Positions 7,097 through 54,590 of a DNA stretch of 64,000 nucleotides are shown here, one piece after another. This stretch comes from Eukaryota sp. TZLM1-RC (lineage: Eukaryota > Protista > Metamonada: BaSk clade): positions 496,001 to 560,000 of the forward strand of contig JAUPSS010000003.1 of assembly GCA_040285825.1 (NCBI GenBank). Direction: 5' to 3'. The notes under the pieces were generated by a model, which saw only the letters and a list, made by a program, of their open reading frames with translations, did no database searches and was not told the DNA's origin. The stretch's first letter is position 1. Each line of letters begins with the position of its first letter. A program made the position numbers and the translations under genes.

Positions 7097-7316
7097 TATC
7101 TCTCTTGTTGGGAGATGTATGTAGTTGATGTGTTTATTAAATTTGCTTTATTTTTCACTATGACTATGCCAACTATGACTAGATTTTACTAGTCAGTAAT
7201 CAAGGAAAACTTAAATTGAACCCACTGAAATTGATATAACCCTCATGGGATTGGCTGTCATTTCAAGGAAGAATTATCAAATTAAAAACCCAAAACATGA
7301 AATCCATTTTCATCAT

Positions 7317-10179
7317 GCTTCATTGATTATCAATACTTCAAATCTGTTTCTTTTGAGAAATTGAATTCATCCAATTCCTCGTGCAGGTCGTTGATGTGTT
7401 GAATTTTTAAAAACGTTTTTAACCACACAGTAGTATTAAAGTGTCTTCTGGGTTGTCAAACAGTTGAACAAGATTTTTGAACAACCAACTTTCAGTCTTT
7501 TGCTTGTGAATAAAAGCTTGTATTTTATGAATGATCCACAAGTCAAAACTGTAAAAGTCAATTGTCAAAAAATTTGCCGAAGTTTGGCAACCACAAAGTT
7601 GGAAAAATCCTAAAATGTTGCTGAATTGGCAGCTGATGCAGATAATTCAGTGTTTGCATCTTCAATTGTCATTCCGTTAGACTCTATCATTTGGTTCTTG
7701 TTGTATTCTACCTCAGTATACTTTGTCTCCCATCGTGTTTGTTTCTCATGCATCCTACTTATCAAAGGCCAGGACATCTGAGTCATTCTCAATTATTTGA
7801 ATTTCTTGTCTTGATTCATCACCCGACTATTTCTTTGCTGTTCAGTTTCATGTTTAAGCACCATAACTAATTGCTGATCCGTTTTTTTACTCCCAAAAAA
7901 CAATAAATGACGTTTTCCAGAATTTTGCCTTGAAAAGTATCAACAACAACATCATCAAGTTATAAATCAGAAATATGAGCCTTGCTGTCTGGCTTACGGT
8001 TCTGACTTTGTAAATTATGACGAAGATTCTACAAATTCTAATATTCTATTAAATTTTAATTTTTATCTGTGTGGATAATGTTGTTGAATTTATAAATCTT
8101 TTGTTTGAACATTGGTTTGTTTAAATCAAGAAAATTAGATCATAAGTAAGATTGCCCAGATGGTTTGAGTCTATGAACTTGGTCTTGTGTATTGACCATT
8201 TTTAATCTCTGATCTGGCAACAATTCATCCATCAATGTTTGTCTAATGATTGTCCATATTGTTTTTGTATTATTATGAAAATATCCTGGACATACAGTGG
8301 TTGAAACAGAAGAATTATGATATGGTTTTTTCTCTCTCCTGGTGATATATTGGGCAATTGTAATTGCTGGTTTTAGAAATATTTGATGATCTTTTTCAAC
8401 AGCATTTGCAAGAAAATGTGTATCCACTGGAAATATGTTATTAACTAAACTCTGGTAAGTGACCAAATTCTCGATTTGACAAGTCAATGGCTCAATAAGA
8501 CCTTCAAATATGTCTGTGAGTTCATTATTTCTTATATCATGTTGTTCACATAAATCGAAAAATTCATCAATTGGAAGGTCTGAAATATTTTCTGGATGAT
8601 GAAACAAAGAACTCAAGCAATTTCTGTCATCAACTAAAAACAAGTTTTTGAATCGACGAAGCCTAAATCTATATAGTGAAGTAATTGTAGATAATGACGT
8701 TTAGTATCCACGCAGCTTTCGCATTTCTGAAAACACATTTTTCAAATATGGTTTGTCAAAATACACATTAATAAAACAATTGATATGTTTTTCATAATTT
8801 AATTTCTAATCATTCTCAAATTTGGGAAACATTAATGGGGCCATATACTGAGGTGGTCTACTGAAGCAATCAGTTGGAAATCGTGAAAACTGTTCAGGCT
8901 TGTGTCTTAAGTGATCAAGCTAACTCAATGTTTTGTTTAACTTATGTTGCTCAAAGGTAGTTCTTAAAGTATAAACTCCTTCAGCATAAACAAAGTCTTC
9001 AAGATTCTGTGGAAATGCAGTTCTTGGTTTTACTATTTTTTGCCCATAATACTCGGCTGAAATATAACGAATTCTGGCCATTAATGATTCATATAATTTG
9101 ACAGAAATTCGTGGTAATAGTAAATTACGTTCAAATCGGGACTGTAAATACAGCTTCAAGCAACATGTAGTATGAATTCGTAACTGTTGAAATTTTGAAG
9201 CAGTTTTTTTCAATTTGAGTACCACATTTGAATGTTTAACGATTGAGTTGACGGCGACATGAATGGTTTTATAAGATAATAAAATAAATTAAATTTTCTG
9301 AAACAACATGAAAAGTTTCAGACAAAGGATACAATCATGAAGCCCATATTGAATTAAATTTTGTCTCAATGGAAAATACGCTAAACAACTTAATAAAATA
9401 AGGGTAAATTTTTGATGAAGTTCGATCTTCTTTTCACAAATCATTTTATATGCCAAAATGCCTAAACCAAAATCGTATTGAATTTTGATGAATTACTTTG
9501 CAAAAACAGTGTGTCTAAAAGAGAAAAGCCTTTTTTCCTGATGCAACTTCTTTCCATCTTGGTAAAAGTTGATTGAGTACATCAATTGCTGAATCATCTG
9601 GAACAATGGAAAATGGTAAATCAAAATAATTTAATCGATTTTTCATAATTTGTAATTCGAGCTGCGTTAAATTGTGATCAAAAAGCAATGAGGTTGATGA
9701 TTACAAATTATGTTTAAAGACCTACGAAGCAAGGTTTTTTCGTCAGACATTATTTCTGCATGTATATCCATTTCGATAACAGGTAATCTGGTAATTTGAG
9801 GGCTTAATCTCAATACAAGTGAATACTTACTTTCCAAAAAGAAATTATGGCGGTCAAACCTTTCAACAACGACTGAAATTAAAAATCTTTTTGATCTGAG
9901 ATCCACTCATCCATTTGCTCATCAGTTTTTCTTTTCAAAAAATTTACACCCTCTTTTCTCTTTTTGGTAATTTTCATCAGGAGGGAGAAATTGGTTATCA
10001 TGATTGTGGTAAAGTTGGTCATCCTGAGAGGTTTCAAGATCAAAGCACATAGCAGTGGGAAGATTTGAATTTGTGGTCATTCATTTGAATTGAATCAAAG
10101 GATCAGGCTTGAAGCCAATAAGACTTAGCTCAATTTTTTTGCCCATACTCAGTTTCAATGGTTTCTTTGTCAAAATCTA
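7317..10179 (-). mobile_element. Fanzor1 family A copy 1 (exonuclease-Fanzor), pseudogenised, truncated at both ends
   Basis: Reverse-complement homolog of 27535-32050. ORF pieces 9667-9906, 8920-9225, 8140-8643 and 7610-7792. Contains MCFDLET, QYGLHDC, RIHTTCCLKLYLQ and EVLIINEA. Homology stops after the RuvC-II Glu. Confidence 0.85.
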
Positions 10180-10890
10180 AACCAACTTTGTTTTATGTTT
10201 AATAATTTTAGAATTTTCGGCAACAGACACCGGATTCTTGTGATTTGACTGAGCTAATGGTATGAAAGAATTATAACACACATCAGTTGATCTCACAACA
10301 GTAATGATAGTGGTACCATCAAGTCCTTCAAGCATTAAATCACCTTTGTTACGATTAAAAGAAGTCAAAGTGTCCTCATCAACCAAACGAGAAAGGAATG
10401 GTTCCAAATAGGAGACAAATTTTTGAGACTTAGACATACAAAAGAGCTGATCTCTAACTACATCATGGACTTTTGATCGAAAAGTAATAAAATGTTTACA
10501 GTTAAACAAATGATTTGGAGAAATGATAATAGAAATGATCCACATTTGTAAAGTAAATTATGAGGAACGTTTTTGAACCCAAATTAAACATCGAAGGCGC
10601 ATTGTACAAGAAAATGTGGTATCATCTAAAAGAAGACCATAAATTTGAAGAATTTGAGGAATTAAACAAAATGAAGAACTATTTTGAGTATCTAACAAAA
10701 AATTTGCGAAAGCGGGATTATCACTTTTGGTCGAGCCAAGACGAACATTAAAATCCAACCCTTCACAAACTATTGTTAATTTTTGTTGCAATTTTTTAAC
10801 ACAATTCCTCAAGTTAACTATTGTTCTAGGTGGTATTTCCTGCACATTATCGGGAAAGCATTTACTCCAGATTTCAGGAGGTAAACAATA
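10180..10890 (-). mobile_element. CRE-like non-LTR retrotransposon fragment (post-RT, CCHC and RLE region), diverged subfamily
   Basis: ORFs 10558-10845 and 10177-10545 align to 29246-30754 (KKLQQKL, NPAFANFL, HLFNCKHFITFRSKVHD, LEPFL, KGDL). Confidence 0.85.
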
Positions 10891-10956: not shown

Positions 10957-13875
10957 ATGGAGCTTCCGGTGTCAGTGTATGATCCTTCTACTTCATGGAA
11001 CCTTGTCTCTTCTATCTTTAAATCCCTTTCTCCTATATCTAGTTTAACAACATCGTTTCAGCAGTTACCATATCAAACAAACCCTGTTCCTCTTTGCTTC
11101 ATACCATTCGACATTGATGTGTTTTACTCTACAAGCGAACCTTTCAGTCTTTCAAGGCAGCCTTTAGTCAGCTTCTGTGTATACACTCTGCAAACACAAG
11201 CAGACTTAACTAAGTGGTTAACTTCTGTGTCTGGAGTTGCAGAACCTTTAGTAGTAATTCCAGTTTCAAACTCGAAGAAAATGCCAAAAATTGAAAGGAA
11301 ACAGCTCAAAAAAGTGATTGATTCTCTAAAAAATGATTATAGGATCATAACTGATGCCAGAATTTCCATTATTGACCATCAAAATGATCATTCTCAAAGT
11401 TTAGGCTCAACTTTAACTAGTTTGTTTGCCAATTCTCTTTCATTTAGATTGAATAAGCTTTACTCAATTTGGAACCTGTACACGAATCAGGTTGTTAATG
11501 AAAATCTTAGTCCAATGTCTTTGTTCAGAAGCTCTTCAGCTCTGAGTAGTACATTGAATAACTTTGGTCTAAGGTGGAAGTCAATGGAAGTTTGGTCGGA
11601 AAATTTGGAGTTTGTGACCAAAAATTCATTATTTGATAGGATTTCCACATTTGTCAATCTTAACATTGATTTCACTTCATTTTCTGCAATTAATTATACC
11701 AATAGAATTGAGTTTCTCACCAGCAAAGTTGAACAAAAATCAGTTTTAGCGTCTAGGTTATCGGTAATTAGGGTTGCTCTTTCTATGGGATTTAATTTGC
11801 TTAATGGAAGTGATTGTGATCAGAATTTGATTGATTCTTTTAGTCAGTTTTTAACCTATATAATTGACAGTTTGCCCTTTCTTCTATGTATGTCTAGTCA
11901 AGAAAAATTCGTATTTTCTATTTTATGGATAGTATTTACTATTCTAGAATTACATTTCAGATTTAATTCAATCAAGGCCGTTTTTACCGAGAATTTCCTA
12001 AAAACACAACTTAAACTCAATACGATCGGCAGGGATTTGACAGGCTTGGTGCTTCTGCTTATTGGAAAAGATGTGAAGAACTTAAATCTATATTTTAATA
12101 TCAATGTCATGTTCAAAAAAGTTGAGAAATGTTTTTCAGGTGATTTCGGTGAATATTTCGCTGAATTTATTCAAAAATTCGCCGATAATTTTGAATTTTT
12201 GAAATCTGGATATTTCGACTTTCAAGATGATGTTGGAACGTTATTCAATCAATTTTTTAATCATTTTATCCATGAAGTGGCAAACAAAGCTAGTAATAAT
12301 TCCAAGCTATTTTACTTTTACCAATGTCATCAATCCAAAGAGAATTTATTAACTCTAATCGAGAGATTTGCTGTTGATAAATTTTACACAATTTGCTCCT
12401 ATTTGTTTTCAATTCTTTTTAACAAATTCACCCTTTCTGCCAAGGAATTTGAACATTTAGTCCCTTATTTATTTAAGTTGAGGTGTTCTTTAAGTTGTAT
12501 TAGCCAACCTCGCCTAGATGATGAATCAAGTGTTGTTTTTCCCTTGACTTCTAGTCTATTGCCTGTGAATGAAGTTTCAGTTGATAATAACTTTATCTTT
12601 GTAAAGGTCTGTTCAGCCTCCGTTCACCCTTTTATTTCTCATGTGTTTTCAAATTTCGTTTGTGCATTTACTCTCACGGTGTATGTCAATGATAACGAAA
12701 TTCCTTTGATGATAACGAACTCAATGGAAAAGGTAACGGACTATTTCCTATTAAAGTTTGACCTCTCTTTTCTATCAATTCCTTCTCATCGTTCTACTTG
12801 TTCCACTAAGAGCTTGATGTTTAAGTTTTCTTCTGTGGGTTTTATTCTTCATTTCAATACCCCATTAAAATTTAGTTCTATTAACCACTCAATTGTTGAG
12901 ATTTCCGCAGAACAGCCATGTTGTGTACTGATTGTTGACACTGTCTCTCCTTTAAAAATAAACTTAACAACCAGAAAAAAGCTATTTGATTCAAAGTTAA
13001 TTTTGAAGTTTCCCTCGTCTCTAGATCAGCAAGAAGTGATTCTTCATGATGTCAAGTGTAACATGTTAGATTTTACTTTCAAAAACACCAACGGTTGCTC
13101 AGAAATCTTTTTTGGTTCTGCACTGGATGTTGGAAGCTTTGAAGTATTGTTGCTTGTCAAGTGCAAAAAGGACATTTCTGGACCCATTTATATCGATTTT
13201 GCTTACTTTCAGAGTGTGTGCGACTCCAAGCAAAGCTTTTTCCCCTTTGAATTATCAATTTTACCAATTATTCCCTTTTCAGTTTCATCTTTTTTTAAGG
13301 AGGTGCCAAACAATCGCACAGGTTTGTTGGTGGAGATCCAATCAAAAATTCCAATACCAGTCAATTTACGTGATGTTTCTATCTTTGACAACCACAGACG
13401 AATTCATCTGATATCAGACTGTATTTGGTTGCACGAAAGGGACAATGTTCTCTCGAAATTTCATTTGTTTGATGAGCAATTGATTTCCAGAAAGGACATG
13501 TTTCTTCAACTTGATTACACACCAAAATGTGACTTTCCTGAGTTTGTAATGACATCATCTTTTTCTTTAAATGATAGCCTTGAACACAGAACAGCTGGAC
13601 AGATGAGCTATTCTTCACAGTGTCAACGAGGTAAAGTTTTTGTTGTGAAATTTGAAACAGAGTCGAAATTCTGTTTAAATGTTCGTCTTAATTCTCATTG
13701 GAGGAGTTTAGACGCTAATTTGATTGATGATTTTGAAATCACTGAAAACTCTCTTCCATTACTTCCTGTATCTTCTGGGTTGATTCCCCTTCCTAGGTTC
13801 TATTTGAAGGTAGAGGGGTCTGACAGTTTGGAAGTTGAAGGTTCTGGTGACTTGGTATTGGTCAATGAGTCGTAG
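10957..13875 (+). CDS. Probable TRAPP II subunit TRAPPC10/Trs130-like protein
   Basis: Intact ~972 aa ORF from ATG 10957. N-terminal VSVYDPSTSWNLVSSIFKSLSPI and C-terminal LLPVSSGLIPLP resemble TRAPPC10 termini. Identity recognised from motifs only. Confidence 0.5.
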   Translation: MELPVSVYDPSTSWNLVSSIFKSLSPISSLTTSFQQLPYQTNPVPLCFIPFDIDVFYSTSEPFSLSRQPLVSFCVYTLQTQADLTKWLTSVSGVAEPLVVIPVSNSKKMPKIERKQLKKVIDSLKNDYRIITDARISIIDHQNDHSQSLGSTLTSLFANSLSFRLNKLYSIWNLYTNQVVNENLSPMSLFRSSSALSSTLNNFGLRWKSMEVWSENLEFVTKNSLFDRISTFVNLNIDFTSFSAINYTNRIEFLTSKVEQKSVLASRLSVIRVALSMGFNLLNGSDCDQNLIDSFSQFLTYIIDSLPFLLCMSSQEKFVFSILWIVFTILELHFRFNSIKAVFTENFLKTQLKLNTIGRDLTGLVLLLIGKDVKNLNLYFNINVMFKKVEKCFSGDFGEYFAEFIQKFADNFEFLKSGYFDFQDDVGTLFNQFFNHFIHEVANKASNNSKLFYFYQCHQSKENLLTLIERFAVDKFYTICSYLFSILFNKFTLSAKEFEHLVPYLFKLRCSLSCISQPRLDDESSVVFPLTSSLLPVNEVSVDNNFIFVKVCSASVHPFISHVFSNFVCAFTLTVYVNDNEIPLMITNSMEKVTDYFLLKFDLSFLSIPSHRSTCSTKSLMFKFSSVGFILHFNTPLKFSSINHSIVEISAEQPCCVLIVDTVSPLKINLTTRKKLFDSKLILKFPSSLDQQEVILHDVKCNMLDFTFKNTNGCSEIFFGSALDVGSFEVLLLVKCKKDISGPIYIDFAYFQSVCDSKQSFFPFELSILPIIPFSVSSFFKEVPNNRTGLLVEIQSKIPIPVNLRDVSIFDNHRRIHLISDCIWLHERDNVLSKFHLFDEQLISRKDMFLQLDYTPKCDFPEFVMTSSFSLNDSLEHRTAGQMSYSSQCQRGKVFVVKFETESKFCLNVRLNSHWRSLDANLIDDFEITENSLPLLPVSSGLIPLPRFYLKVEGSDSLEVEGSGDLVLVNES

Positions 13876-14886: not shown

Positions 14887-14969
14887 TTGAGATGGTTTCT
14901 GATGCTCTGTTTTCCTTTGAATCTCTCTTTCAGAGAGTTGCATTTAGTTGTTTTGTTTTGGGAGAGATG
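14887..14969 (+). mobile_element. Short 3'-terminal fragment of the CRE-like retrotransposon
   Basis: gatggtttctgatgct...gagagttgcat...gttttgggagagatg matches ~30650-30730. Confidence 0.75.
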
Positions 14970-14979
14970 CCAATATAAA

Positions 14980-16623
14980 AAACCATCAGAAAAAGGCGAG
15001 CTGATGTATTGAGCACACTGTTAAACCGTGTAAAAACACTTTTCAACAAGAATCCGCTGAGTCGACACAAATACGCTTTGATTGATAATGAAAATTTGAT
15101 GTTATATAAAAAGCTCAGTGATGAGGATGAATTAATTGTGGTCATTTCTGCAAGAGAACATTCCATCTCTTACTGTCAATCTACAAGATAGATTGTTGTA
15201 AAATTTGCTTCTTCTATTTACACTCGAGAACAGATTGAATTAAATCTTTGTTTTTGCGATCATGTAGAAAAGTCAACAAGCAGAAAAAAATAATTAATTT
15301 AATATGAATTTTCGTATTCCCTCTTATATCAGAACTGACAAGACAAGCTTATTGAACTTGTACTTTGCCGAATTCAAAAACATTCTAGGTAAAAAGTAGT
15401 CTTATCAATTTATTAATCAAGCTGCTGAATTGGTTTTATGGAAAACCTTTTTGAAAATGGACGAGATCAAAAACACGAAACTTTATTCAGAATATTCAAT
15501 GTACATCATGTCTAGCTTCAAGACTGATCGAGTAGCAGTAGCAGTTCATTCAATCTAGCATTGACTTGAAAAAATACAAAATAACTACAAAAGAATTCAA
15601 AGAAAAAAGAAAAATAAATTGATGACCCCAGCATTAATCCTTCTAAATTTCAAGATGTGGCTCTTGCTGCTGTTGATCCAGGGAAATCTGATCTACTCTA
15701 TTTTTCTGCCAATTTAGCCACTGGAATGACGCATTCAAAAAAACCTGAGAGAGATAAATATGTTATTTTGAGGTACACTCAAAATTAGAGAAAACTTGAT
15801 TCGAAAAGTTTCAAATTCAAAAGAATAAGAAACAGCATATGGAATGACACTCTTATCACAATAGGTAACTCTACTGGTAGAGTGATTGCTCTATCCAATT
15901 GTGAACTATCTGAAGAGCAACAACAAAGAATGGATTTAAACAGCAGTAAAATTAATCAAATGACTGAAAGAACAATTAGTTTATTAAGAGGGAAAGTACC
16001 TCAAGAAATCAAATATTACATTTATGGAGTATATTAAACAAAAGAATTTTGTGAATTGTATTGTTGGTGAGGTCTATCATCAAAAAAATATTTAGGAAAC
16101 TAAATGGTGGGCTGAGATTAATCGCACAAGATCTGAGGCAAAAATGATTCAGTGCTTCAAATAAGTTATTGGTGATACCAGCAAAGTAGTTATTGGAATC
16201 GGAGACTGGGACCAGCGAAAACACATGAAATTCAAAAAACCTACCAAAGGAAAAGATTTGAGAATTTAATTTAAAGGTTGGCCATAAGGTCTTTTTAATT
16301 GATGAGTTCCGAACCAGTTGCTGTTGTGTCAACTGTAAGAAAGCGGAGAAAACAGTTGAAATGCTCAGATGTTGTAGAAATTCCATGCCATAAAAAAAGG
16401 AACGAGATGTCTAATGGTCACGGGCTTACCATGTGTGAATCATGCGAAAGTTTGTGGAATAGAGATCGAGATGCTTCGCTGAATATGTTGGCAGTGATGG
16501 AAGCACATGTAAAAGGTGGAGATAGACCGGAATACCTGCAGAGAGCCGATGTTGTTGGAGGTTCAAAAAAATGGTATTAAGAAGAAAACTCCAAAACTCA
16601 GTCCCTCAGGTATAGAAAAGGAC
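14980..16623 (+). mobile_element. Fanzor1 family B copy 1, pseudogenised; all three RuvC acidic residues retained
   Basis: IPSYIRTDKTSLL; SFKTDRVAV; RuvC-I LAAVDPGKSDLLY (Asp 15675); LRYTQN; IGIGDW; RuvC-II FLIDEFRTSCCC (Glu 16304); CESC; RuvC-III WNRDRDASLNM (Asp 16464); GGDRPEYLQR. Several stops and frameshifts. Homologous to 35477-37010. Confidence 0.88.
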
Positions 16624-16640
16624 TGACAATATCTAAAAGA

Positions 16641-27114: not shown

Positions 27115-27349
27115 TTATGAATTTAAAAATCATTTTTTTATTTTAAACATATGTTATTTTGATGTTTATGAGTTTTTTCATTTTTGTAGTTTAGATTCTG
27201 GCACTTTAGATATGGGATGTTGTGTCTTAAATTGTTCATTTGATGATGTTGAGTTTGATTATTATGTTTATAATTTATCTTTTCAAACCAGTAGCTGCTG
27301 ACGTCTTCTATAAACAAACCCTTTTACTGTTGATTTAACAATAGATAAA

Positions 27350-27373
27350 GATGTTGAAGCAAATCCTGGTCCC
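27350..27373 (+). other. 2A/StopGo-like ribosomal skipping motif DVEANPGP
   Basis: GAT GTT GAA GCA AAT CCT GGT CCC matches D[V/I]ExNPGP. It is in frame with ATG 27212 and with ORF 27482-27970, with no stop between the motif and the exonuclease. Confidence 0.8.
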
Positions 27374-29149
27374 AGAAAGAGAAGATCTAATTTTAAATCA
27401 ACTCCTCCATCAAGAATTATAGGAAATGCAATTTTTGACCAACAAACATCAGGGCGTAAGCGAAAAAAACAACAAAAAGCATTGAACCAAGAAATTTGTA
27501 TTGAGAATACAATGTTGAATATCGAGAACAGGAAGATTTTGACAAAAAAACCATTGAATCCGAGTATGGTCAAAAGAATTGAGCCAAGTCTTAGTGGATT
27601 CAAGCCTGATCCTTTGATTCAATTCAAATCAATGACCCCAATTCAAAATCTTCCCACTGTTATGTGCTTTGATCTTGAAACCTATCGTGATGGTCATCTT
27701 TATCAAAATCATGATGGCCAATTTCTCCCTCCTGACGAGATTATCAACAAAAGGAGAAAAGAGGGTGCAAATCTCTTGAAAAAGAATACTGATGAGCAAA
27801 TGGGTGAGTGGATTTCTGATCAAAAAGTGTTTTTAATTTCCATTGTTATTGGTAAGTTTGATCGTCATAATTTCGTTTTGGAGAGTAAATGTTCACTTAT
27901 ATTGAGAATTAGTCCTCAAATCAGATTACCAGACATTGATATGGATGTTCATCCAGAAATAATTCTCTGACGAAAAAACCTTGCTTCGTAGGTTCTTAAA
28001 CATTATTGGTGATCTTCAACCCCCTTTCTTTCTAAATCACAACTTAATGCAGTTTGATTTACAGGTTTTGAAAAATCGATTAAACTATTTTGATTTACCA
28101 TTTCCCACTGTTCTAGATGACACAGCAATTGATGTACTCAATCAACTTTCACCAAGATGAAGGGAAGTTGTTAGCAGGGAAAATGGCTTTTTTCTTCTAG
28201 ATACTTTGGTTTTTGCCAAAAAATTTATCAAAATACCCTACTGACATGGATTAGGCAATTTGGCATATAAAATGATATATGAAAAGAAAATCAAACCTCA
28301 TCAGGAATTTTCATATATTTTGCCAATTGATTGTTTAGCTACTTCTCCTCTTATACAAAATTCGATTCAATATGGGCGTCATGATTGTATCCTTTGTCTG
28401 AAACTTTTCGTGCTGTTTCAGAAAGACAAATTTATTTTATCATCTTATAAAACCATTCGAGCAACCGTCAACTCAATGGTTAAACATTCAAATGTGATAT
28501 TCAAATTGAGAGAAACTGCTGTAAAATTTCAACAGTTACGAATTCATACTACATGTTGCTTGATGCTGTATTTACAGTCCCGATTTGAACATACTTTACT
28601 ATTACCACGAATTTCTGTCAAATTATATGAATCATTAATGGCCAGAATTCGTTATATTTCAGCTGAGTATTATGGGCAAGAAATGGTGAAACCAAAAAGT
28701 GTATTTCCAGAGGATTTCAAAGACTTTGTTTATGGTGAAGGAGTTTATACTTTAAGAACTACCTTTGAGCATCAAAAGTTAAACAAAACATTGAGTTAGC
28801 TTGATCACTTAAGACACAAGCCTGAACAGTTTCCACGATTTCCAACTGATTGCTTCAGTAGACCACCTCAGTATATGGCCCCATTAATGTTTCCCAAATT
28901 TGAGAATAATTAGAAATTAAATTGTGAAAAACATATCAATTGTTTTATTAATGTGTATTTTGACAAACCAGATTTGGAAAGTGTGTTTTCAGAAATGCGA
29001 AAGCTGGGTGGATACTCAACGTCATTATCTACAATTACTTCACTATATAGATTTAGGCTTCGTCAATTCAAAAACTTGTTTTTAGTTTATGATAGAGATT
29101 GCTTGAGTTTTTTGTTTCATCATCCTGAAAATATTTCAGACCTTCTGAA

Positions 29150-30785
29150 AACAAATTTTCAGAACTTGCCGATTCATATGAAAATATTGGGCTTCATCTT
29201 AATGCCAGCAAATGCCTTCTGATTGGCTCTTCTGCTCAAGACCTCGTGATAAACGATTCTATTGTCCCTTTTACTAATTATAGTAGTGATGCTTTTAAGT
29301 TCCTTGGTTGTTGGTTAGGAAATGTGCCTCAAATTCAGAATGAATTGCAAGTTATTTTGGAAAAAATGAAAATTGAACTTGATTCAATTTCTTCTTTAGA
29401 TATAGAAAAGCATATTAAATTTTTCATGCTTAAAATTTGCTACACTGGGAGAATAACCCACATTTTGAGATCTTGTGCTCCTTCCATAGCATTAGATTTT
29501 TGTCGTTCATTCAATTCATTGAGAACAGAATTTTTTGCTGATTTATTGGATGTAGAACCAGGAATGTTGAAAAGTCACTTATTTTCTTCAGCAAATTTGG
29601 GGGGTATTGGATTTACTAAATCTTCAATTTTGTGTCAATCAGCATTCTTGGGTGGTGGCAAAAATTTTATTTATGAATTTTCTCGTAGATTTCCTGATGA
29701 TTCTCATCTGTTAGTCCCCAATTGTAGTCCCTATTTGTATGAGTTATCTTGTGAACTTGAAAAATTACCACCACAAATTTGGACCAAATGTTTTCCTCAA
29801 TCAATTCAAGAAATTCCAAACCGATCTCTATTTAATTTACAGTTTTGCTGTAAAAAGCTTCAACAAAAATTGTTCAAGATTTTTGACAGCTTGGATTTTG
29901 ATGTTAGACTTGGCTTGGCCAAGAAAAAGAATCCCGCTTTTGCAAATCTTTTACAAGATATGTGTGACAGTACTTCTTCTGCCTTAGTAACAACAATTCC
30001 ACAAGTTTATGGTACTCTCTTATCCGATTCTGCTTGGACTCTGAATATGAGATTTCGTTCCTTTATCTGGCCTGATAATTTACCTCATATTTTAATTTGT
30101 AAATGTTCTCGAGAAATTACAACTACTCATTTGTTAAATTGTAAACATTTTATTACTTTTAGAAGCAAGGTTCATGATGCTGTAAGAGACCAGTTATATT
30201 GTATGTGTAAATCTCATAGAATTGAATCCTTCTTGGAACCTCTGTTGTCAAATTTGTTTGATGCTGAAAATGATTTTCATAAGAATAATAGAGGTGATGT
30301 CATATTACCTGGATTAGATGGAAGCTTCATTTTATTGGATGTAATGTCTGTTGATCCTTGTAATGCCTCAAATGAAAGGCTTGTTACTTCTGAAATTCAT
30401 AATCCCCTTTCAAATGCTGAAAATTTTAAATTCAAAAAATACAATGAACCTTTGTCCAAATTGGCCAGTCTACAGCATGCAAAATACAATTTGTATCCAT
30501 TTGTATTTTCCCTTTTTGGTTCACTTGCACCAACTGCTTTACGTTTTTTGGATGATTTTGAAATGATTGTAAAGAGAAGAACTGGCAGAAATTTCAACAG
30601 ATTGTTTTGGCAAAATAGAATTGTGTTTTCTATTTTTAAGGGGATGTTGAAGATGGTTTCTGATGCTTTGCTTTCTCTTGGATCTCACTATGAGAGAGTT
30701 GCATCTAGTGTTTTTGTTTTGGGAGAGATGGATTTTTTAGATGTTGATTTATAGGTTTAGAATAAAATTAAATTTAACAAAAAAA
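29150..30785 (+). mobile_element. 5'-truncated CRE-like non-LTR retrotransposon with poly(A) tail and 12-bp TSD
   Basis: Intact ORF 29246-30754 (FKFLGCWLG, GGIG, CKC...HLLNC, RSKVHD, E-P, RGD, LDV, KKY, PFVFSLFG). AATAAA at 30761 and an A-run at 30779-30786. TSD AGACCTTCTGAA at 29138-29149 and 30786-30797. The empty site is visible in copy 1 (~8570-8590). Confidence 0.95.
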
Positions 30786-32287
30786 AGACCTTCTGAATGA
30801 TGAATTTTTCGATTTATGTGAACAGCATGATATAAGAAATAATGAACTCACAGACATATTCGAAGGTCTTATTGAGCCATTTACTTGTCAAATTGAGAAT
30901 TTGGTCACTTACCAGAATTTAGTTGATAACATATTTCCAGTGGATACACATTTTCTTGCAGATGCTGTTGAAAAAGATCCTCAAATATTCCTAACACCAG
31001 CAATTACAATTGCCCAATATATCTCCAGTAGAGAGAAAAAACCTTATCATATTTCTCCTGTTTCAACCACTGTATGTCCAGGATATTTTCCTATTGATAC
31101 AAGAACACTATGGAGAATTGTTAAACAAACATTGATGGATGATTTATCATCTACACAGACGCTGAAAATGTCCAAAACATTAGCCCAAATTACGAAATTC
31201 AAACCACCTGAGCAATTTGACTTTTGGTCTAATATTCTCGATTTAAACCAACCAATGTTCAAACAGAAGAACTATGAATTCAACAACATTATACACACAG
31301 ATGGATTTAATATTGCAGTAGAATTTGTTCGTCAGGATTTACAAGGTCAGAAATGTAAGCCAGACAACAAGGCTAGTATTTCGGATTTATATATTGATGA
31401 TGTTGATGTTGATACTTTACTACAATATTTATTTATATATTTTTATTTATTGTATTTTGGGAGTAAAAAGACTGATCAAGAACTAGCCATGGTTCCTCAG
31501 AATGAAACTGAACAGCAAAGAAATAGTCGGGTGATGAATCAAGACAAGAAGTACAAATGGTTAAGAATGACTCAGATGTCCTGGTCTTGGAAAAGTAGGA
31601 TGAATGAAAAACAAAAACGATGGGCGACAAGGTATACTGAGGTAGGTTACGACAGGAACCAAATGATAGAGTCTTACGAAAGGACAATTGAAGATGCAAA
31701 CATGAAGTTATCCGCGTTTGCTGCAAATTCAGCAACTTTTATAGATTTTTCCAACTATGTGGTTGCCAAACTTCGGCAAGTTTTTTTTGACAATTGACTT
31801 TTATAGTCTTGACTTGCTTGTGGAGCATTCATAAAATGCAAGCTTTTATTCACAAGCAAAAGACTTAAAGTTGGTTGTTAAAAAGCCTTGTTCAGCAGTT
31901 TGGCAATCCAAAAGACACTTTAATACTAATGGGTGATTGTGGTAAAAAAGGTTTTAAGAATTTGAAACATCATAGGCCTACTCGAGGCATTGGATGGATT
32001 CAATTTCTGAAAAGGAATGGATTTGAAGTATTGATGATTAATGAAGCTTTCACTTCAGCAAAATGTCCTGTTTGTTTTGAAAAGGTTGCTACGTTTTTGA
32101 GAGTAACAAATCCCAGATTCTATAGAAGAGAAAAGACTCCTGTTACTACATGCCATGGTTTATTAGCTTGTAATAGTCAGAGTTGCAAACTCAGTAACAA
32201 AGGCTCAACAAAGCTGTTCAATAGAAATAAGCTGGCTTGTCTGAATATGTTTGCAATTGCCGAAGCCAGAATGAGTGGTAATGAAAG

Positions 32288-32384
32288 GCCTCAGTATCTG
32301 TGTAGTAGATAGTTTTTGTAATTATTCCACACGAAAATTGATCGTGTATTTATGGGAATTTCCCACAAAGAATAATATCTTACA
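32288..32384 (+). ncRNA. Candidate Fanzor family A omega-RNA (scaffold to ~32364 plus flank-derived guide)
   Basis: Conserved with 45103-45197. Stems TATCTG/TAGATA, ACACG/CGTGT and GGGAA/TTCCC. Similarity ends abruptly after GGGAATTTCCC. Confidence 0.6.
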
Positions 32385-32420
32385 CTTTCCAAAACTCTTA
32401 TATAAATATTAACTGTCCGA

Positions 32421-35476: not shown

Positions 35477-37660
35477 GTCCTTTTTACACCAATGTAGAGA
35501 GAATGAGTTTTTGAGAAGTGGAAGATTTTCTCCTTGATACCTTTTTCTTTGATCCTTTGTCAACCTTAATTCTCTGCAGGTATTCCGGTCTATCTCCACC
35601 TTTTACATGTGCTTCCATCACTGCCAACATATTCAGCGAAGCATCTCGTTCTCTAAACTTTCGCATGATTTACACATGGTAAGCCCTTGACCATTAGACA
35701 TCTCGTTCCTTTTTTTATGGCATGGAATTTCTACAACATTTCAGCATTTCAACTGTTTTTTCCGCTTTCCTACAGTTGAAACAACAACAACTGGTTCGGA
35801 ACTCATTAAGTAAAAAGACCTTATTACGAGCCTTTTCAAATTAAATTCTCAAACCTTTTCCTTTGGTAGGTTCTTTGAATTTCATGTGTTTTCGTTGTTC
35901 CCAGTCTCCGATTCCAATAACTACTTGGATGGGATCACCAATTACAGATTTGAATCTCTGAGTCATCTTCGCCTCAGATCTTGTGCGATTAATCTCAGCC
36001 CACCATCTTGGTTTCCTAAATCTTTTTTGATGATAGACTTCACCAATGGTACTATTCACAAAAATCTTAAAATAATTCTTTTGTTTATTATATGCCATAA
36101 ATCTATCAAATCGACAGCTTTGGAAATAGAATTGGGATACAGTTGCTTCCCATTCTGCTACAGATTTAGTTTTTTGTTCATTATTTCTCAAATTTAATGA
36201 GTTATCAAACCGGTTTGTACCTCAAAATAACATATTTATCTCTCTCAGGTTTTTTTGAATGCGTCATTCCAGTGGCTAAATTGGCAGAAACATAGAGTAG
36301 ATCATATTTAGCTAAATCAGCAGTAGCAAGGGTCATATCTTGAAAATCAGAAGGAACTAATGCTGGGGTCTTCAATTTGTTTTTCCTTTTTTTTTTAATT
36401 TTTTTGCAGTTACTTTGTATTTTTTCAAGTACATTCTAGATTGCCTAAACTGCTACTGCTACTCGATCAGTCTTGATGCTTGACATGATTTACATTGAAT
36501 ATTCTGAATAAAGTTTCGTGTTTTTGATCTCGTCCATTTTCAAAAAGGTATTCCATAAAACCAATTCAGCAGCTTGATTAATAGATTGATAAGACTACCT
36601 TTTACCTAGAATGTTCTTGAAATCGGCAAATTACATGTCCAACAAACTTGTCTTGTCAGTTCTGATACAGGAGGGAATACAAGAATTCATATTCTATCAA
36701 TTATTTTTTTCTGCTTGTTGATTTTTCTACAGCATCACAAAAACAAAGATTTAGTTTAATCTGTTCTCGAGTAAAAATAGGAAACACAGAAATTGCAACA
36801 ATGTTTCTTGTAGATTGACAGTAAGAGATGGAATGTTCTCTTGCAGAAATCACAATTAATTCATCCTCATCACTGAGCTTTTTACCCAACATCAAAGTTT
36901 CAATATCAATTACAGGATATCTGTATTGAGTCAGTTGATTAGCATTGAAAAGTGTTTTCACACGTTTCAAAGATGTGCTCATTACATCAGCTCGCCTATT
37001 TCTGATGGTGTTTTGCAAGGAGGAACATTTTTTTGTCTTAAATATTTTTCGTTTATCGTCAACACAGCTATGAAAACATATTTTGAGTTGAATAAGTTGT
37101 TTAATTTGGACTGAATCAATTGAATTGAACTGATTTGACAAAAACAGATTGATCATTCTTTTTGCAAACAGTATTGTGAATATTCCACATTCATATAAAT
37201 TGGATTGATTAAATTGAAATAAATTTTGACTGAAATTGATGCCAAGTATTTCAAAAATTATTGAATTAATTCTTTGATGTTGTTCTTCATTATGACGAAG
37301 ACTATCAAAAAGAAAAACATTTATTGTTCTGCATTTGATCCAGAATGCATCAAGTACCCAATGTTGACCAATGGTAAATTGCTCGTCAACAGATGCATTC
37401 AAATTTGAATGATGAAATGCATCATTATAGGGTAGAAGAATCAAAGTGTTTTCTTCGTTGCCAGAAGTGATCAATTGTGAGCAAAAATCATTTTGAACAA
37501 ATCCCCTAACAAATAATAAAGCTGATGCGATGGACCAAACAAGTATTTTGTGATGTGACAGTGGAGTTGATGACTGATTGATAAAGTTGTTGATCGAATC
37601 AGTGATTTGTTCATCATCTAACCAGCTGTCTTCGACATCATCACTTTGTTTTCCTCCACC
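35477..37660 (-). mobile_element. Fanzor1 family B copy 2 with N-terminal Ulp1/C48 protease domain, pseudogenised
   Basis: WLDDEQI (~37624), QHWVL (His 37363), FDSL (Asp 37306) and QSNLYECG (Cys 37189) lie in one open frame that continues into sequence shared with copy B1. C-terminus IGIGDWEQRKHMKFKEPTKGKGLR, NEFRTSCCC, GGDRPEYLQR. Confidence 0.85.
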
Positions 37661-39237
37661 TGATATATTAATATTTGTGAAATATATATTTATTATTAAA
37701 AGGATAAATTTATATAATTTTGATTTAAAAATTTATAAAATGATTTATCAAAAAGATCGTCAAACTCTCCAGAATAAGCACAAAACGAATTGCCCCCTTC
37801 CATAAACAGGCTGTGGGTGGAAACACTGATGTATGAAACACAAACAGCTTCCAGGTTCGTGCCCCAGACACGACCTACAAATTCATATATAATGTGTTTT
37901 CTTGAAGGAATCATAAAATGTTTATTAATCAAAATTGTTGAACAATTAATTAAAAAACAATTTATAAAAACTTCATGATAAACTATTTAGACAAATTGAT
38001 CCTTCTCAACTAAAATAGAGGAAGAGTCAATCTGACTAAGTAGTATATTTTCTACCAAATGATAGGAATGGTCTTTGAGAGGAAGTTCCTTTGCTACCTT
38101 TGCGGATATAATTGTACTCAGGTGTATAAAGGTACAAAAATACCTATTTAATAGTGTCATAATGGAAAAATGATGTTTAGAGCCACCGATCTATGAGTGG
38201 CACATCCATTGTGATCCGAGCCCATATTTGTCCACTACAAACTAAAAACGGAATTAATTGGGAAATATCAAAAATGGGTGAAATTATTTTGAAAATCATT
38301 TATCAGGACTGCAACACATAGTGATGAATTTCATTTCAAGATTCACCATCTGAAAGGATCAACGGCTGTACATCAACTTGAAACTGGCATGGATTGTCCT
38401 ACATGTTTACTCCTTTAGATGATCTATAGACTGAATTTCCAAATTCAAATCTAAAGTCTAGTAGAAGTGACATAGACTTGTTTGTAAATGAATGTGAATT
38501 TTGTTCAGAATCAATTAAGTAATAATTTGAAACAATTGTGATGGTGATGGAGAAGACAAGTAAAGGTTATTCATTCAAGTTATTACACAAACCTCAAGAA
38601 CAATTTACTGCAACTATTGAATTGGACTATTGTAATGATTCTAGTGTTGATGGTCTATTGGATCAAGTAATTGACCATTACAGGTGAAGAAGTGAAGGAT
38701 ACTTCTAAAATAGATGGAAAATGAAAACAAAGCAAGTCGATCAGTAATAGTGTTGTAGTCACCCACAACGTTGGTTGTGGGTGAATGGTTGTGGGTGACA
38801 TCATTTTGATTGGAAGAAAGTGACTCATCATTGATCATTACTAGTGTTGACTGAAGTAATATTTAAACAACTCCTTTACCACTTTTGTACAAAGATAAAT
38901 GACAGTAAATATCGGTAGGGTCTAGCTTGTTGACCAGCTCAAACTTTTGTAAGAAGACCCAATTAGTTTAAAACTGTATTGTCCCAAAAATGATAAATTC
39001 AGTGAATATAGGCTATTTAGTTTCCATAGTGTCTGAGAATGTGACTAGAGGCTTAAAATAACAAATGAACCTATTCAAGTATAGCTAACAAAAAAACAAA
39101 TTTCAAAAAGTTTATTGAAAAAGCTTCACCTAATTCAATTCTACCATGATGAATGAATAGTAATTTAAAGAATTAACACATAAATTTTGATTAAGCTACA
39201 ATCAAAAAGCAAAAATCACAATCAACCTGAGAAATAC

Positions 39238-45057: not shown

Positions 45058-45102
45058 AGAAGGATGAATACTTGAATTGAAAGCGTCAAGAATCTTGATA
45101 TG

Positions 45103-45197
45103 GGGAAATTCCCATAAGTACAGGATCAATTTTCGTGCAGAATAATTACCAAAACTATCTACTACACAGATACTGAGGCCTTTGATTACAACTCATT
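45103..45197 (-). mobile_element. Solo right end of Fanzor family A (candidate stand-alone omega-RNA locus)
   Basis: Reverse complement aatgagttgtaatcaaaggcctcagtatctgtgtagtagatagttttggtaattattctgcacgaaaattgatcctgtacttatgggaatttccc aligns without gaps to 32270-32364, with about 7 substitutions. Confidence 0.9.
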
Positions 45198-45929
45198 TTT
45201 TTAGAAAATAGCCTTTTATTTATAAAATACCGACTGAAAATTCTTCAAATACACAACTGAAGCTCCACATCCTCAAAACCTGTCTCTCCTATATCGAAAC
45301 AGTTAATTACTAAAGATTGAGAAAATTTACTGAAAGAAGAAATTGAATCAGAAATGAAGTTCACCATTTCCTGATAAATAGAAAATGTTGGTTGGAAGAA
45401 TTACAAGGGTCAATGGACATGACATCTAAAATGGTAAAACATTCATTTCAGCCAGGAACAATCAAATCACCTCTTGTCAGAGCCATAGAAGCTCCATTGT
45501 AGCGCGTACTATTATATTAAGGTCATCAAGAATTTTGATAGCAAAGGCTCTAAAAGGGAATATTTGTTTACTGATACTAAAACTCAATCGAATATAGGTG
45601 AACCGTACCACATTGGTTCAGCAGACGAGCCGCTGAATGTTTCGAACTATGGGATTTCTGACACTGAATTTGCATTGTTTTTGCGGTTGATTGAAAAAAC
45701 GTTCATCTTAATGCACTGATTTTTCGATCTGGAAGTTTTGAAACATGAAAGCATTAGTTTAATCTTTATGAGTTCCATGTTTTTTAACCCTTACACGAAG
45801 CCTAAAGCTCTACGTCATCAAACCTTGCATTTCCAGCATCACAATTTATAATTACAGCTTTTGTAAAATAACAAATTGATTTCATCAGTGCTTTGAAAAA
45901 TGAGGGGAAAATTTGTATATGCTAATAAC

Positions 45930-52328: not shown

Positions 52329-54590
52329 AAAATTCTGTTCTCAATGAATTAAAAGAACGACAAAAATCTAATGCTATGGAAGGAGCACAAGATCTCAAAA
52401 TGTGGGTTATTCTCCCAGTGTAGCAAATTTTAAGCATAAAAAATTTAATATGCTTTTCTATATCTAAAGAAGAAATTGAATCAAGTTCAATTTTCATTTT
52501 TTCCAAAATAACTTGCAATTCATTCTGAATTTGAGGCACATTTCCTAACCAACAACCAAGGAACTTAAAAGCATCACTACTATAATTAGTAAAAGGGACA
52601 ATAGAATCGTTTATCACGAGGTCTTGAGCAGAAGAGCCAATCAGAAGGCATTTGCTGGCATTAAGATGAAGCCCAATATTTTCATATGAATCGGCAATTT
52701 CTTGAGCAACCAATTCTAGTAAATCAAATGAACCAATCAAGGATATATCATCCATATAAGCAACTATTTTTATAGAAGGGTATTTTTGCTTAATGATATT
52801 TAAAGTTTTGTGAATAGCTAAACAAAACAATAATGGACCTAAAGGGTCACCTTGCTTCACACCAGAAGATGATTTAAGAGCAAATGAATTAAAAATTAAA
52901 TCTGATTCTTTACCATAAAAATGGTAGAAAAAAACTCGATAGCTCAGGAAAATCAGATTTAATAACTTCAAAAATTGCTTCTCGCTTTACAGAATTAAAA
53001 GCATTTTTAAAGTCGAGATTAAAAATAAAATTATTTTCCTCTGCATTAAAAAAGGTATCAGAGGCAATAGCAGCAACAGAAGCACCATCAATTGTTTTGA
53101 TTCCAAATTGATGAGGATTTAAAAATGTAGAAGCTTTGTCTTTGACACGATCGAAGACAATTGATGCCAGCAAACGAGAAAGAGATTCACCAACAGCAAT
53201 TGGGCGTATTCCATCAGGTTTGATTCCGTTTCCAGGCTTTACTAAAGCAATCAGACGTGCCGCGAGCAATTCAAATGGAGGATTTATTTTCAAAACAATT
53301 AATTGTTGAAAATAGTGGGCTAGATCATCAGCAATTTCGGGAGCACTGGAACACGCTATTTTTAAGAGATCAAAAGAAATTCCAGATGGGCCTGCTGCTT
53401 TCCCCTTAGGTAATTTTTGAATAGCTTTAAGAACCTCAAATGCAGTAATAGGATTTTCAATCCAAAAAGGACACACTTCAGGCTTGCTGCACTTGAAATT
53501 TTCTTGAGGATGCAACTTTTGGAGTTTTTCAAGGGTATCAGAGTTTACATCAGCCAAAGAAGAGGAAAACAAAGACTGCTTTGCGGCACCATAACGACCA
53601 CGTAAGCACAATTTTCGGCAAATTTTTGATTTTACAATTTTTCTATTTCCAAATTTTTTCTTAAAACAATTTTTGTTTTTTCTAGCAAAATATTTCCAGA
53701 AGGATGAAATATTCCACTTATTATTTTTCAATTCAGAAGTAAAATTTCTCATTTCCATTGAGAAGGGGATTGTGCTGGCGGGACTTATTTCTACTGGGAT
53801 CCGGATCGGGGGTCTTACGGTATCAACGGCTTTACAATTCGTACAAAACAGAAGTTTTCGACCATTTCGTGAATCTGCAACATCTTTTTTGCAAAATGGA
53901 CAACAAAAATTACTGTTTTCAGAAGGGGAAGAAGAGGGAACACTAGAAGCATTTAACTGTTGATCGTCAGAAACATTATTTTCAGCACCTTTCACAACGG
54001 CAACAGCTGGAACAGAACATTTGAGAATTTGTTGAGCAGATTTTAATTCAAATTCTCTTTTTTGTTTCTCAGGGCACGTTCTCGAATTATGACCACTGAT
54101 ACCACAAATCGAACATTTTTTAGCACCTTTTAATGGCAGTGGTTTCGTTTTTTCAGTTCTTTCAATTTTGTCAATTTTTGAGTTAAAAGTAGAAATAGAC
54201 TTTTGACTTTTTGCAGTTTCAGCTGGAGAAAACAAATTTCGAGAAACGGAGTTGTTAATAGAACGCGCAACAGAACGCAAGGAACGTAATGGAGGTTTTT
54301 CTGTGTTTTTTCTGGTACAGTGATCAGTTTTTGAATGAAAATTTTTTTGAGATGAATTTCGAGCATAGCTTGTATTGTGGGGAGAGTGGGGAAGTGGAGT
54401 GGATGAGCTTGATCTGACTGATAGAATCTTTGCTTGGGCGTTCCAATCAGTATCAGAGTCACTATCAGCCAAAGGCATCGTTTTGACAGAGAAACAGTAC
54501 GACTTTGACGCCTTGACAGAAAGTGAAATATGAAAGGGTTGACTAAGGGAGGGAGAAAAAAAAAGCTTTGAATTCAAGAGCACTTACAGG
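52329..54590 (-). mobile_element. 5' part of the CRE-like retrotransposon (zinc knuckle + reverse transcriptase), one frameshift, 3'-truncated
   Basis: ATG 54478; CSICGISGHNSRTC knuckle; CPFC/CTNC; KAAGPSG, RPIAVGE, QFG, DFKNAFNS; frameshift near 52930; GVKQGDPLGPLLF, YMDD. 52329-52697 is nearly identical to 29167-29534. Confidence 0.95.

Follow-up and report, generated by a model that had tools for sequence, protein, structure and literature searches.

The Fanzor1 nucleases SpuFz1 and GtFz1 cut 14–21 nt beyond the TAM (PMC10432273). The RuvC triad D-E-N is active in GtFz1, and SpuFz1 is more active when carrying the exchange D606N (PMC11423790). Capture of exonucleases and proteases by transposons is known as well: DEDDh exonucleases ride in P and piggyBac elements and DnaQ-like ones in LTR polyproteins (PMC3627910, PMC6338049), and Ulp1 and 2A are found in other elements. 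In the literature searched, none of these transposon-borne domains is reported to be fused to Fanzor or TnpB. The earlier note on the DNA analyzed here knew of no Fanzor with a tethered exonuclease, and no paper describing a natural fusion of this kind was found, which makes the exonuclease-Fanzor1 fusion apparently undescribed.

The window (the whole stretch of contig JAUPSS010000003.1 that was analyzed, 64,000 nucleotides) almost certainly contains one dead copy of a mobile element that is present in multiple copies in the free-living protist Skoliomonas, and the single ORF of which consists of a leader, a 2A motif, variable cargo or linker, an exonuclease, and a Fanzor1 with a D-E-N RuvC site, followed by a structured right end.

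Domain composition and decay of the window copy

The family A element (copy A) occupies at least positions 27152..32367 (+ strand) and is 90% identical to the full-length paralog L009. Its right end is set by four copies and a contig loose end at 32367, whereas the real left end may lie further 5′; the range of 27212–32364 given earlier thus identified the locus correctly, but its limits were slightly too narrow.

A family-B-type DEDDy 3′–5′ exonuclease domain (27662..28445, +) was recognized by its catalytic motifs, Pfam, profile, and fold. The complete DEDDy set claimed in the earlier note could be read from the sequence: Asp (GAT, 27671) and Glu (GAA, 27677) of ExoI, Asp (GAT, 28056) of ExoII, and Tyr (TAT, 28371) and Asp (GAT, 28383) of ExoIII, arranged as D-x-E, N-x3-F-D, and Y-x3-D like in family-B polymerases. 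When six divergent family members were aligned, these positions were among the 27 invariant columns of about 330; at random, the chance of all five being invariant is about 3e-6. Undamaged members score 30–63 bits against Pfam DNA_pol_B_exo1 (cut-off 23; E to 3e-17), with the undamaged paralog P0001 passing at 30.5 bits, and the N-terminal part matches the Pol delta profile with an E of 3.5e-9. The fold search (model residues 1 to about 235), for which the earlier note had named lack of a DEDD fold as an argument against its claim, returned family-B polymerases at a VIA Z of about 10–11 (9.4–10.8), with human Pol delta at a VIA Z of 10.7 (rmsd 3.0 over 128 residues). Judged by motifs and predicted fold, the N-terminal domain is a DEDDy 3′–5′ exonuclease of the family-B polymerase type, putatively with two-metal activity; its known counterparts are the proofreading domains of Pol delta, epsilon, alpha, HSV UL30, RB69 gp43, and E. 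coli Pol II. Unlike the exonucleases of that family it has an additional helical segment, about 35 aa long, behind ExoI, and unlike the whole polymerases the fusion continues without palm, fingers, or thumb: no polymerase Pfam domain was matched in the full-length fusion members, and no polymerase domain lies 3′ of the exonuclease in copy A, as had been claimed, ExoIII leading straight into the Fanzor N-terminus. Candidate donors of the exonuclease are the host Pol delta or a viral polymerase.

The N-terminal part of Fanzor1 (WED/REC start; 28446..29149, +) aligns to the SpuFz1 N-terminus and is in frame with ExoIII. It starts with YKTIRATV at 28446, just 21 codons behind ExoIII and with no 2A motif between, and the ORF from 28260 to 28799 covers both, in agreement with the earlier reading. 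The C-terminal part (30786..32312, +), delineated by motif positions and a weak Pfam Cas12f1-like_TNB match, contains the RuvC-II Glu (32043), the zinc finger (32064/32169), the RuvC-III Asn (32226), and the terminal stop codon (32310–32312). The RuvC-I Asp was removed by a deletion at about 31420–31450, and frameshifts at about 31781 and 31813 and a stop at about 31866 follow. A degenerate RuvC-I in another frame of copy A was rejected as a candidate, as L002 shows the real motif and its deletion. Inserted between the two parts is a 5′-truncated non-LTR retrotransposon (29150..30785, +) with an RT end, a restriction-like endonuclease, and a poly-A end, which by its motifs is presumably CRE/R2-like. 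It is flanked by a 12-bp target-site duplication (29138–29149 and 30786–30797), and on some contigs, where it is missing, 29137 is joined to 30786. The idea that the exonuclease is part of this retroelement was discarded, because copies without the insertion have the same junction.

Upstream of a basic linker, and in the ExoI frame, lies the 2A/StopGo-like motif D-V-E-A-N-P-G-P (27350..27373, +). Compared with the class A consensus G-D-V/I-E-x-N-P-G-P, the window reads K-D-V-E-A-N-P-G-P and the TZLM3 members D-G-D-V-E-A-N-P-G-P; L009 has DGDVEANPGP, similar motifs occur in P0022, P0033, P0026, P0007, and P0020, and in some lineages His replaces Glu. By sequence the motif matches the class A consensus, with skipping being putative. 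Given five stops, three frameshifts, the 1.64-kb insertion, and the lost RuvC-I Asp, the window copy of the gene is a pseudogene, and its worth is that of a pointer to the exonuclease-Fanzor family.

The second long copy and the solo end mentioned in the earlier note were both found. Copy B (7317..10178, − strand) is truncated at both ends, heavily decayed, and 84–87% identical to copy A, and its 5′ side adjoins a piece of a retroelement from the non-LTR family that is inserted in copy A; the solo right end (about 45101..45197, −; 93% identity) is located behind a non-LTR poly-A end. The 1-nt insertion at about 27961 and the stops at 28157 and 28241 (codons 166 and 194), which break the exonuclease of copy A, are indeed missing from copy B. 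The exonuclease region of the latter has five frameshifts and one stop of its own, a junction stop at codon 256, and Glu instead of Asp in ExoII. Common to both copies are the TAG stops at 28797 and 28911 in the Fanzor part, situated in a tract that is 95–96% identical (81–89% elsewhere), and the loss of the RuvC-I Asp. Because of these shared defects, copies A and B alone give no open frame for the whole protein, and the paralogs L002 and L009 were therefore needed; the earlier notion of a consensus with one reading frame holds for the exonuclease region but not for the whole protein. An alternative code with TAG as a sense codon does not account for the common stops: at these positions L002 carries TAT and a codon for Leu, long host ORFs follow the standard code, and the stops fall within the tract of 95–96% identity.

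The assignment of the C-terminal part to Fanzor1 was corroborated by the profile and fold check proposed earlier. The best PDB profile matches were SpuFz1 (E 4e-44, covering both N-terminal and C-terminal stretches), PpFz1 (1e-41), and GtFz1 (6e-14), and SpuFz1 held Foldseek ranks 1–4. Measured against the Fanzor1 motif D-x(125-275)-[TS][TS]-xx-C4 zinc finger-x(5-50)-RD (Bao and Jurka 2013), intact relatives have the DPG Asp, E-x-x-T-S 182–185 aa further on, the C4 finger, and R-N; their RuvC triad is D-E-N, with Asn as the last residue like in GtFz1. Profile and Foldseek comparisons thus place the C-terminal part, WED/REC region included, nearest to Fanzor1 and not Fanzor2 or TnpB. RNA-guided, TAM-dependent cleavage of dsDNA by the fusion is predicted.

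Intact relatives and purifying selection

Damage is present in each of the five S. litria copies examined. One S. litria paralog, 90% identical, has exonuclease and Fanzor in one frame, and the sister isolate Skoliomonas TZLM3-RCL has genes for at least nine full-length fusions with both catalytic sets, all eight catalytic positions being present in the nine proteins. In the genomic DNA of L001, L003, L004, L007, and L008 the exonuclease-Fanzor stretch is free of stops. The intact copies that the earlier note had asked for thus exist as single ORFs, not as separate ones, and the fusion extends beyond a few related copies to at least seven lineages in three Skoliomonas isolates, most pairs of which are 25–55% identical. 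Among intact copies, dN/dS is 0.13–0.46 for the exonuclease and 0.19–0.31 for the Fanzor part, which indicates from sequence comparison that the fusion is under purifying selection.

In every lineage seen, the exonuclease is joined directly to the Fanzor start. The divergences of the two parts are correlated (Spearman 0.65) and their trees largely match (FastTree), whereas the cargo upstream of the exonuclease is exchanged among copies (one or two Ulp1, a DEAH helicase, or none). Since the divergences track each other while the cargo swaps, exonuclease and Fanzor appear to be a unit kept together.

Is the junction nevertheless accidental, a polymerase fragment that came to lie next to Fanzor in a handful of dead, related copies? 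The damage to the S. litria copies and the failure to find the architecture outside Skoliomonas would fit. Against it stand the intact ORFs of TZLM3-RCL, which already refute it, as well as the signs of purifying selection, the catalytic residues that do not vary, and the spread of the fusion over lineages of about 30% identity in three isolates; a chance junction is hardly conceivable. As to the wider search suggested in the earlier note, the scans of proteins, viruses, and metagenomes, those of the latter two being of low sensitivity, did not bear out an occurrence outside Skoliomonas. Queried with the junction, HMMER returned Skoliomonas fusions only, plus one short Fanzor-only fragment, from 1.84 billion representatives; viral and metagenome scans, run with tighter alignments and short patterns of low sensitivity, gave no match. 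Word-seeded protein searches yielded Skoliomonas proteins only but also missed known Fanzor1s, so that absence elsewhere is weakly tested.

Right end, predicted guide, and mobility

A conserved right end (32270..32367, +) overlaps the last codons, contains a terminal hairpin, and ends in CA. By analogy with SpuFz1, which set its position (PMC10432273), it is predicted to be the omega-RNA scaffold. It is foldable, with a compensatory change in only 1 of 30 pairs, and had no match in Rfam. The predicted guide (32368..32387, +), derived from the TnpB/Fanzor rule, falls into the flank; a host Rab11-like gene starts at 32422, leaving a gap of 54 nt after the right end, and behind the solo right end, the start codon of a host CK2-beta-like gene follows at a distance of about 45 nt. 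The predicted guides in the window correspond to promoter or 5′-UTR sequence of core host genes. In a prospective test of start-codon docking in TZLM3-RCL, none of three new loci was within 65 nt (called genes).

Copies sit at unrelated host loci, are numerous, and share a sharp right end in CA with a variable flank. No transposase domain was found in flanking and upstream ORFs, and neither terminal inverted repeats nor any of the transposases linked to Fanzor1 (Mariner, Helitron, IS4-like, Sola, MuDR) were detected; these are not strictly required, as Spu-1 has no transposase and the GtFz1 locus no repeats. The RepHel (HUH Rep plus PIF1 helicase) and termini of Helitron or Helitron2 were not found either: a PIF1 ORF that lacks a Rep domain occurs next to a single copy (L011), and nothing at the other loci matches it. 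The fixed hairpin at the 3′ end, the variable 5′ end, and gene capture recall rolling-circle elements, yet are not diagnostic. On one contig, the family A right end (loose end 32367) directly abuts sequence resembling the family B terminal hairpin.

Possible roles of the exonuclease and comparison with known systems

The fusion bears on what becomes of a break once TnpB or Fanzor has cut, and on how eukaryotic Fanzors help their elements, and a natural, selected version points to end-processing as part of that answer. Single-stranded 3′ ends of DNA are the preferred substrate of proofreading exonucleases. What the exonuclease most likely does, and about half of our confidence goes to this reading, is trim the 3′ tail that remains after guided cutting, thereby aiding homing. 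The fusion protein would load the right-end omega-RNA with its flank-derived guide and cut the element-free allele. The TAM-side non-target strand would then have a displaced 3′ tail, single-stranded and about 16 nt long, that is mismatched to the element junction of the donor. The exonuclease, joined straight to the Fanzor N-terminus, would remove this tail in the 3′ to 5′ direction, and the trimmed end, instead of being re-ligated, could serve as a primer on the filled allele, from which the element would be copied. In the predicted structure (pLDDT 50, pTM 0.34; pLDDT 35 for the single-sequence prediction) the exonuclease is not placed relative to the cut. Another Fanzor family of the window has spread although it carries no exonuclease, and the domain is thus not required for spread. 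More broadly, and with somewhat less than even confidence, active natural RNA-guided cut-and-resect enzymes, with the exonuclease trimming the break back to the insertion point, may drive homing of large, transposase-less, cargo-shuffling elements, which in S. litria would dock just upstream of host start codons.

Instead of assisting homing, the exonuclease might chew the ends of the guided break and keep them from being rejoined exactly; empty or rival sites would then be destroyed or mutated, not filled. Engineered nuclease-exonuclease fusions are reported to move repair to deletions or raise editing (PMC12337685, PMC13545839), and the family A right end directly before a family B-like hairpin could reflect inter-family targeting; nevertheless, deletions would be costly in the core-gene promoters and 5′-UTRs that the predicted guides represent, and this role is considered rather unlikely. 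Somewhat less probable still is that the exonuclease is cargo serving transposition, replication, or anti-defense independently of RuvC, fused only through polyprotein expression. The elements do carry and shuffle 2A, Ulp1, DEAH helicase, and zinc-knuckle ORFs, and the exonucleases of P, piggyBac, and LTR elements are precedents for such passengers, but other cargo is exchanged and sits behind 2A or a long linker while the exonuclease is always joined to the Fanzor start. Trimming of RNA 3′ ends is known from some enzymes of the DEDD family, and the domain could mature the omega-RNA by shortening read-through transcripts, which here would run into host genes, from the 3′ end to guide length. 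Native Fanzor guides have a defined length of 11–21 nt, yet Fanzors without an exonuclease yield trimmed guides in heterologous yeast (PMC10432273), and the domain is nearest to DNA-polymerase proofreading domains, not to the RNase D/T type; this role is therefore seen as quite improbable.

Trimming of the tail in aid of homing has a counterpart in T4 intron homing, in which a mobile-element nuclease likewise cuts away from the insertion site and family-B exonuclease influences homing, 43Exo and DexA affecting its efficiency (PMC2988022). There, a protein-guided nuclease is assisted by an exonuclease in trans, borrowed from the phage family-B polymerase; here, one RNA-guided polypeptide would bring its own version of that activity, to a homing process that is inferred. 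The Skoliomonas proteins resemble SpuFz1 (PDB 8GKH/9CEU), PpFz1, and GtFz1 in that the N-terminus, DPG, E-x-x-T-S, the C4 finger, and RuvC-III align; as in Fanzor1s, a conserved structured right end follows just after the stop codon, and as in Spu-1, no transposase is detectable. They differ from known Fanzor1s by an N-terminal exonuclease of about 260 aa, a 2A leader, and variable cargo, hence sizes of 940–2027 aa compared with about 600–700, and by an element without terminal inverted repeats that ends about 55 nt after the stop codon. An RNA-guided nuclease with a tethered exonuclease is also found in TREX2-Cas9, exoCasMINI, and TREX/T5-MmeFz2, which engineers build deliberately but which have performed poorly in the single Fanzor tried: fusions of TREX1, TREX2, and T5 lowered MmeFz2 editing (PMC12923547). 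Unlike these artificial constructs, the Skoliomonas fusion is natural and under purifying selection, and its intact versions KAL0213088 (940 aa) and KAL0210696 (1096 aa) are ready-made templates.

Decayed copies in the window

The window holds densely packed genes with short introns in AT-rich eukaryotic DNA; among its host genes are those for Rpa2 and BBS7 (Pfam) as well as for Rab11-like and CK2-beta-like proteins (judged from sequence). Its source, isolate TZLM1-RC, is Skoliomonas litria (PMC11603281), the assembly of which (GCA_040285825.1) contains family A paralogs with 88–91% identity to the window element. In copy A, the decayed exonuclease-Fanzor1 element at 27152-32367 (+), the five DEDDy residues lie where the earlier note had placed them (ExoI, Asp 27671 and Glu 27677; ExoII, Asp 28056; ExoIII, Tyr 28371 and Asp 28383). 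One ORF (28260-28799) contains both ExoIII and, spaced by 21 codons, the Fanzor start (28446). The window sequence also bore out a second long copy (copy B; 7317-10178, −) and a solo end (45101-45197, −). On its own, the ExoII piece of copy A matched DNA_pol_B_exo1 weakly (E 0.0015; Pfam), as did the last ORF Cas12f1-like_TNB (Pfam).

With the paralog L002 as reference, three frameshifts (codons 100, 829, and 839) and five stops (codons 166, 194, 379, 417, and 856) mark copy A, which has also lost the RuvC-I Asp to a 15-nt deletion. It is further interrupted by a 5′-truncated non-LTR retroelement (29150-30785) flanked by 12-bp duplications; in contigs from a public run, 29137 is joined to 30786 and the retroelement is absent, as are the small indels near 27960, 31781, and 31813. 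Copy B bears ten frameshifts and ten stops. Stops 379 and 417 are common to both copies and lie in a tract of 95–96% identity (versus 81–89% elsewhere), which suggests conversion or a common dead ancestor. Because the two copies are thus not fully independent, the proposal that together they yield a consensus in one reading frame holds for the exonuclease region only. No lesion is common to all five S. litria copies.

Intact relatives and domain identity

The junction peptide, searched with HMMER against 1.84 billion representative proteins, matched 11: one short Fanzor-only fragment and ten proteins from Skoliomonas (TZLM1-RC, TZLM3-RCL, and GEM-RC1). L002 encodes exonuclease and Fanzor in a single frame (1,001 codons, two stops, RuvC-I intact), and at least nine full-length proteins of TZLM3-RCL (940–2027 aa) carry ExoI–III and RuvC I–III. 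At five loci, the exonuclease-Fanzor stretch was free of stops when translated directly from genomic DNA, so the join is not an artefact of gene models; an independent run likewise supplied a 571-nt contig that crosses it without gaps. The architecture is common to at least seven lineages, mostly 25–55% identical. The five DEDDy residues are invariant in six of them (27 invariant columns among about 330), and exonuclease dN/dS was 0.13–0.46 among intact copies and 0.23–0.51 for the dead copies of S. litria. Sequence identities of the exonuclease and Fanzor parts rise and fall together (Spearman 0.65, from pairs that are not independent), and the two trees have their main split in common and disagree at a single branch of weak support, which fits a single old fusion. 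This fusion would predate the split of the isolates (phylogeny in PMC11603281), unless the element moved between them. The original observation is confirmed and the architecture established via intact relatives; the enzyme's function is a prediction.

Profile and fold comparisons identified the two halves as had been predicted. The family profile matched SpuFz1 (E 4e-44), PpFz1, and GtFz1 first, followed, at profile positions 55–250, by Pol delta (3.5e-9), HSV polymerase, Pol alpha, E. coli Pol II, and RB69 gp43. An alignment-based structure model was weak overall (pLDDT 50; 65–89 in the exonuclease core); Foldseek ranked SpuFz1 at the top, then Pol epsilon, delta, and HSV, and VIA-align gave Z scores of 9.4–10.8 against family-B polymerases (model residues 1 to about 235). 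Such near-ties do not single out one donor polymerase. All full-length members have Asn at RuvC-III, which is not a mark of inactivation, since GtFz1 is active with this triad and the equivalent change boosts SpuFz1 activity (PMC11423790). By sequence, structure, and locus layout the family is Fanzor1, with a new domain architecture. In keeping with the earlier note, which knew of no Fanzor with a tethered exonuclease, no natural exonuclease-Fanzor fusion was found in full-text searches of open-access main texts, nor by term searches within the main texts of the major Fanzor/TnpB surveys (PMC3627910, PMC10432273, PMC10530073, bioRxiv 2023.08.09.552727, PMC10691335, PMC11423790).

Element layout and neighborhood

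Copy A aligns with the full-length paralog L009 across 27152-32367. A 2A-like motif at 27350, in the ExoI frame, is kept in L009 and several TZLM3 lineages; around its codons lies an 18-nt inverted repeat (window 27329-27346/27385-27402; L009 6861-6934), which may form a stem in the mRNA or be fortuitous. The 5′ leader contains a unit of about 97 nt, once in copy A (27152-27250) and two to three times in tandem in L009 (about 6560-6780); TZLM3 leaders have tandem repeats too. Between leader and exonuclease, the window copy has a short basic linker, and five Skoliomonas fusion proteins (P0022, P0033, P0037, P0026, and P0007) have one or two Ulp1 protease domains before the exonuclease. P0017 (KAL0221217; L003 10001-16084) is an uninterrupted 2027-aa ORF of DEAH helicase (DHX8/Prp43-like; E 4e-23), exonuclease, and Fanzor1, reminiscent of helicase-nuclease pairing. 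In P0037, a 2A-Ulp1 module from one lineage (91% identical to L005) is joined to an exonuclease-Fanzor part from a different one (97% identical to L008), so that cargo changes partners but the exonuclease-Fanzor pair stays intact. Two loci on different TZLM3 contigs (L003 4594-16163; L007 1630-13671) share three upstream ORFs (about 500, 99, and 240 aa) in identical order, and this block begins at a hairpin that opens with TG. The arrangement points to elements of about 12 kb in which the middle cargo can be exchanged. L003 has an additional 682-aa ORF with zinc-knuckle-like motifs. A 26-bp sequence, longer than usual target-site duplications, flanks the roughly 12-kb L007 element on both sides (about 1575-1605 and 13845-13875). 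L011 carries an intact 1905-aa 2A-Ulp1-Ulp1-exonuclease-Fanzor gene head-to-head with a split PIF1-like helicase (6206-8189, −), beside which no Rep domain was found. Neither terminal inverted repeats in the element nor a transposase in it or its flanking ORFs were detected.

Right ends are sharp, hairpin-bearing, and terminate in CA. Three stems are predicted in the last 98 nt, with little covariation; Fanzor omega-RNAs sit in the equivalent position (PMC10432273). The solo end has about this length and sits behind a retroelement poly-A tail; it may be a mere deletion remnant. Each of the six S. litria Fanzor right ends that could be placed is followed, 13–62 nt downstream, by a host start codon on the same strand (rough background, 0.1–0.2 per site): four of family A (right end/start codon 32367/32422 for copy A, 45101/45057 for the solo end, 13067/13129 in L002, and 10246/10259 in L009) and two of family B (16628/16641 and about 35481/35441 in the window). 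This implies that guides in S. litria are host promoter or leader sequence. The docking was much weaker in TZLM3-RCL (2/6, then 0/3 in a prospective check; 2/9 in total).

Family B, likewise decayed Fanzor1 (about 35480-37800, −, and 14977-16628, +), has the canonical R-D RuvC-III, with an Ulp1-like remnant upstream (37130-37450). A non-LTR family with a restriction-like endonuclease is abundant (10179-10884, −; 14890-14969, +; 45200-45480, −; the insertion in copy A, +; 52329-52702; 59746-59854; 62986-63690), and its 3′ parts repeatedly adjoin or interrupt Fanzor elements; contig depth suggests roughly tenfold the copies of family A. In one public-run contig, the family A right end (32367) runs directly into sequence like the family B terminal hairpin, as if one family had inserted in the other's right end. 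Directly upstream of family A copies lie other Fanzor/TnpB-like remnants (L002, about 8700-9600; L009, about 5000-5760), so that these sites carry more than one family in a stack.

Possible role of the tethered exonuclease

Both conserved nuclease sites reside in one polypeptide with no 2A between them. That they were joined by a chance junction is extremely improbable. The exonuclease might process the break ends destructively, which we regard as unlikely, or be cargo unrelated to the guided cut, which is quite unlikely; that it trims the guide is highly doubtful. Two observations caution against a simple account: MmeFz2 performed worse when engineered as a fusion with exonucleases (PMC12923547), and the window's second Fanzor family has no exonuclease.

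Trimming of a 3′ tail, enabling copying to be primed at the empty allele, has in our view about an even chance of being correct. The SpuFz1 cut falls after base 16–17 on the non-target strand and after 20–21 on the target strand (PMC10432273). At an allele that lacks the element, the 3′ end on the TAM side would then bear about 16 nt not matching the donor's element junction; the guide would displace these as a single strand, and the tethered proofreading-type exonuclease could remove the displaced tail, letting the end prime copying. In phage T4, the efficiency of intron homing is influenced by the polymerase's 3′-5′ exonuclease and by DexA (PMC2988022).
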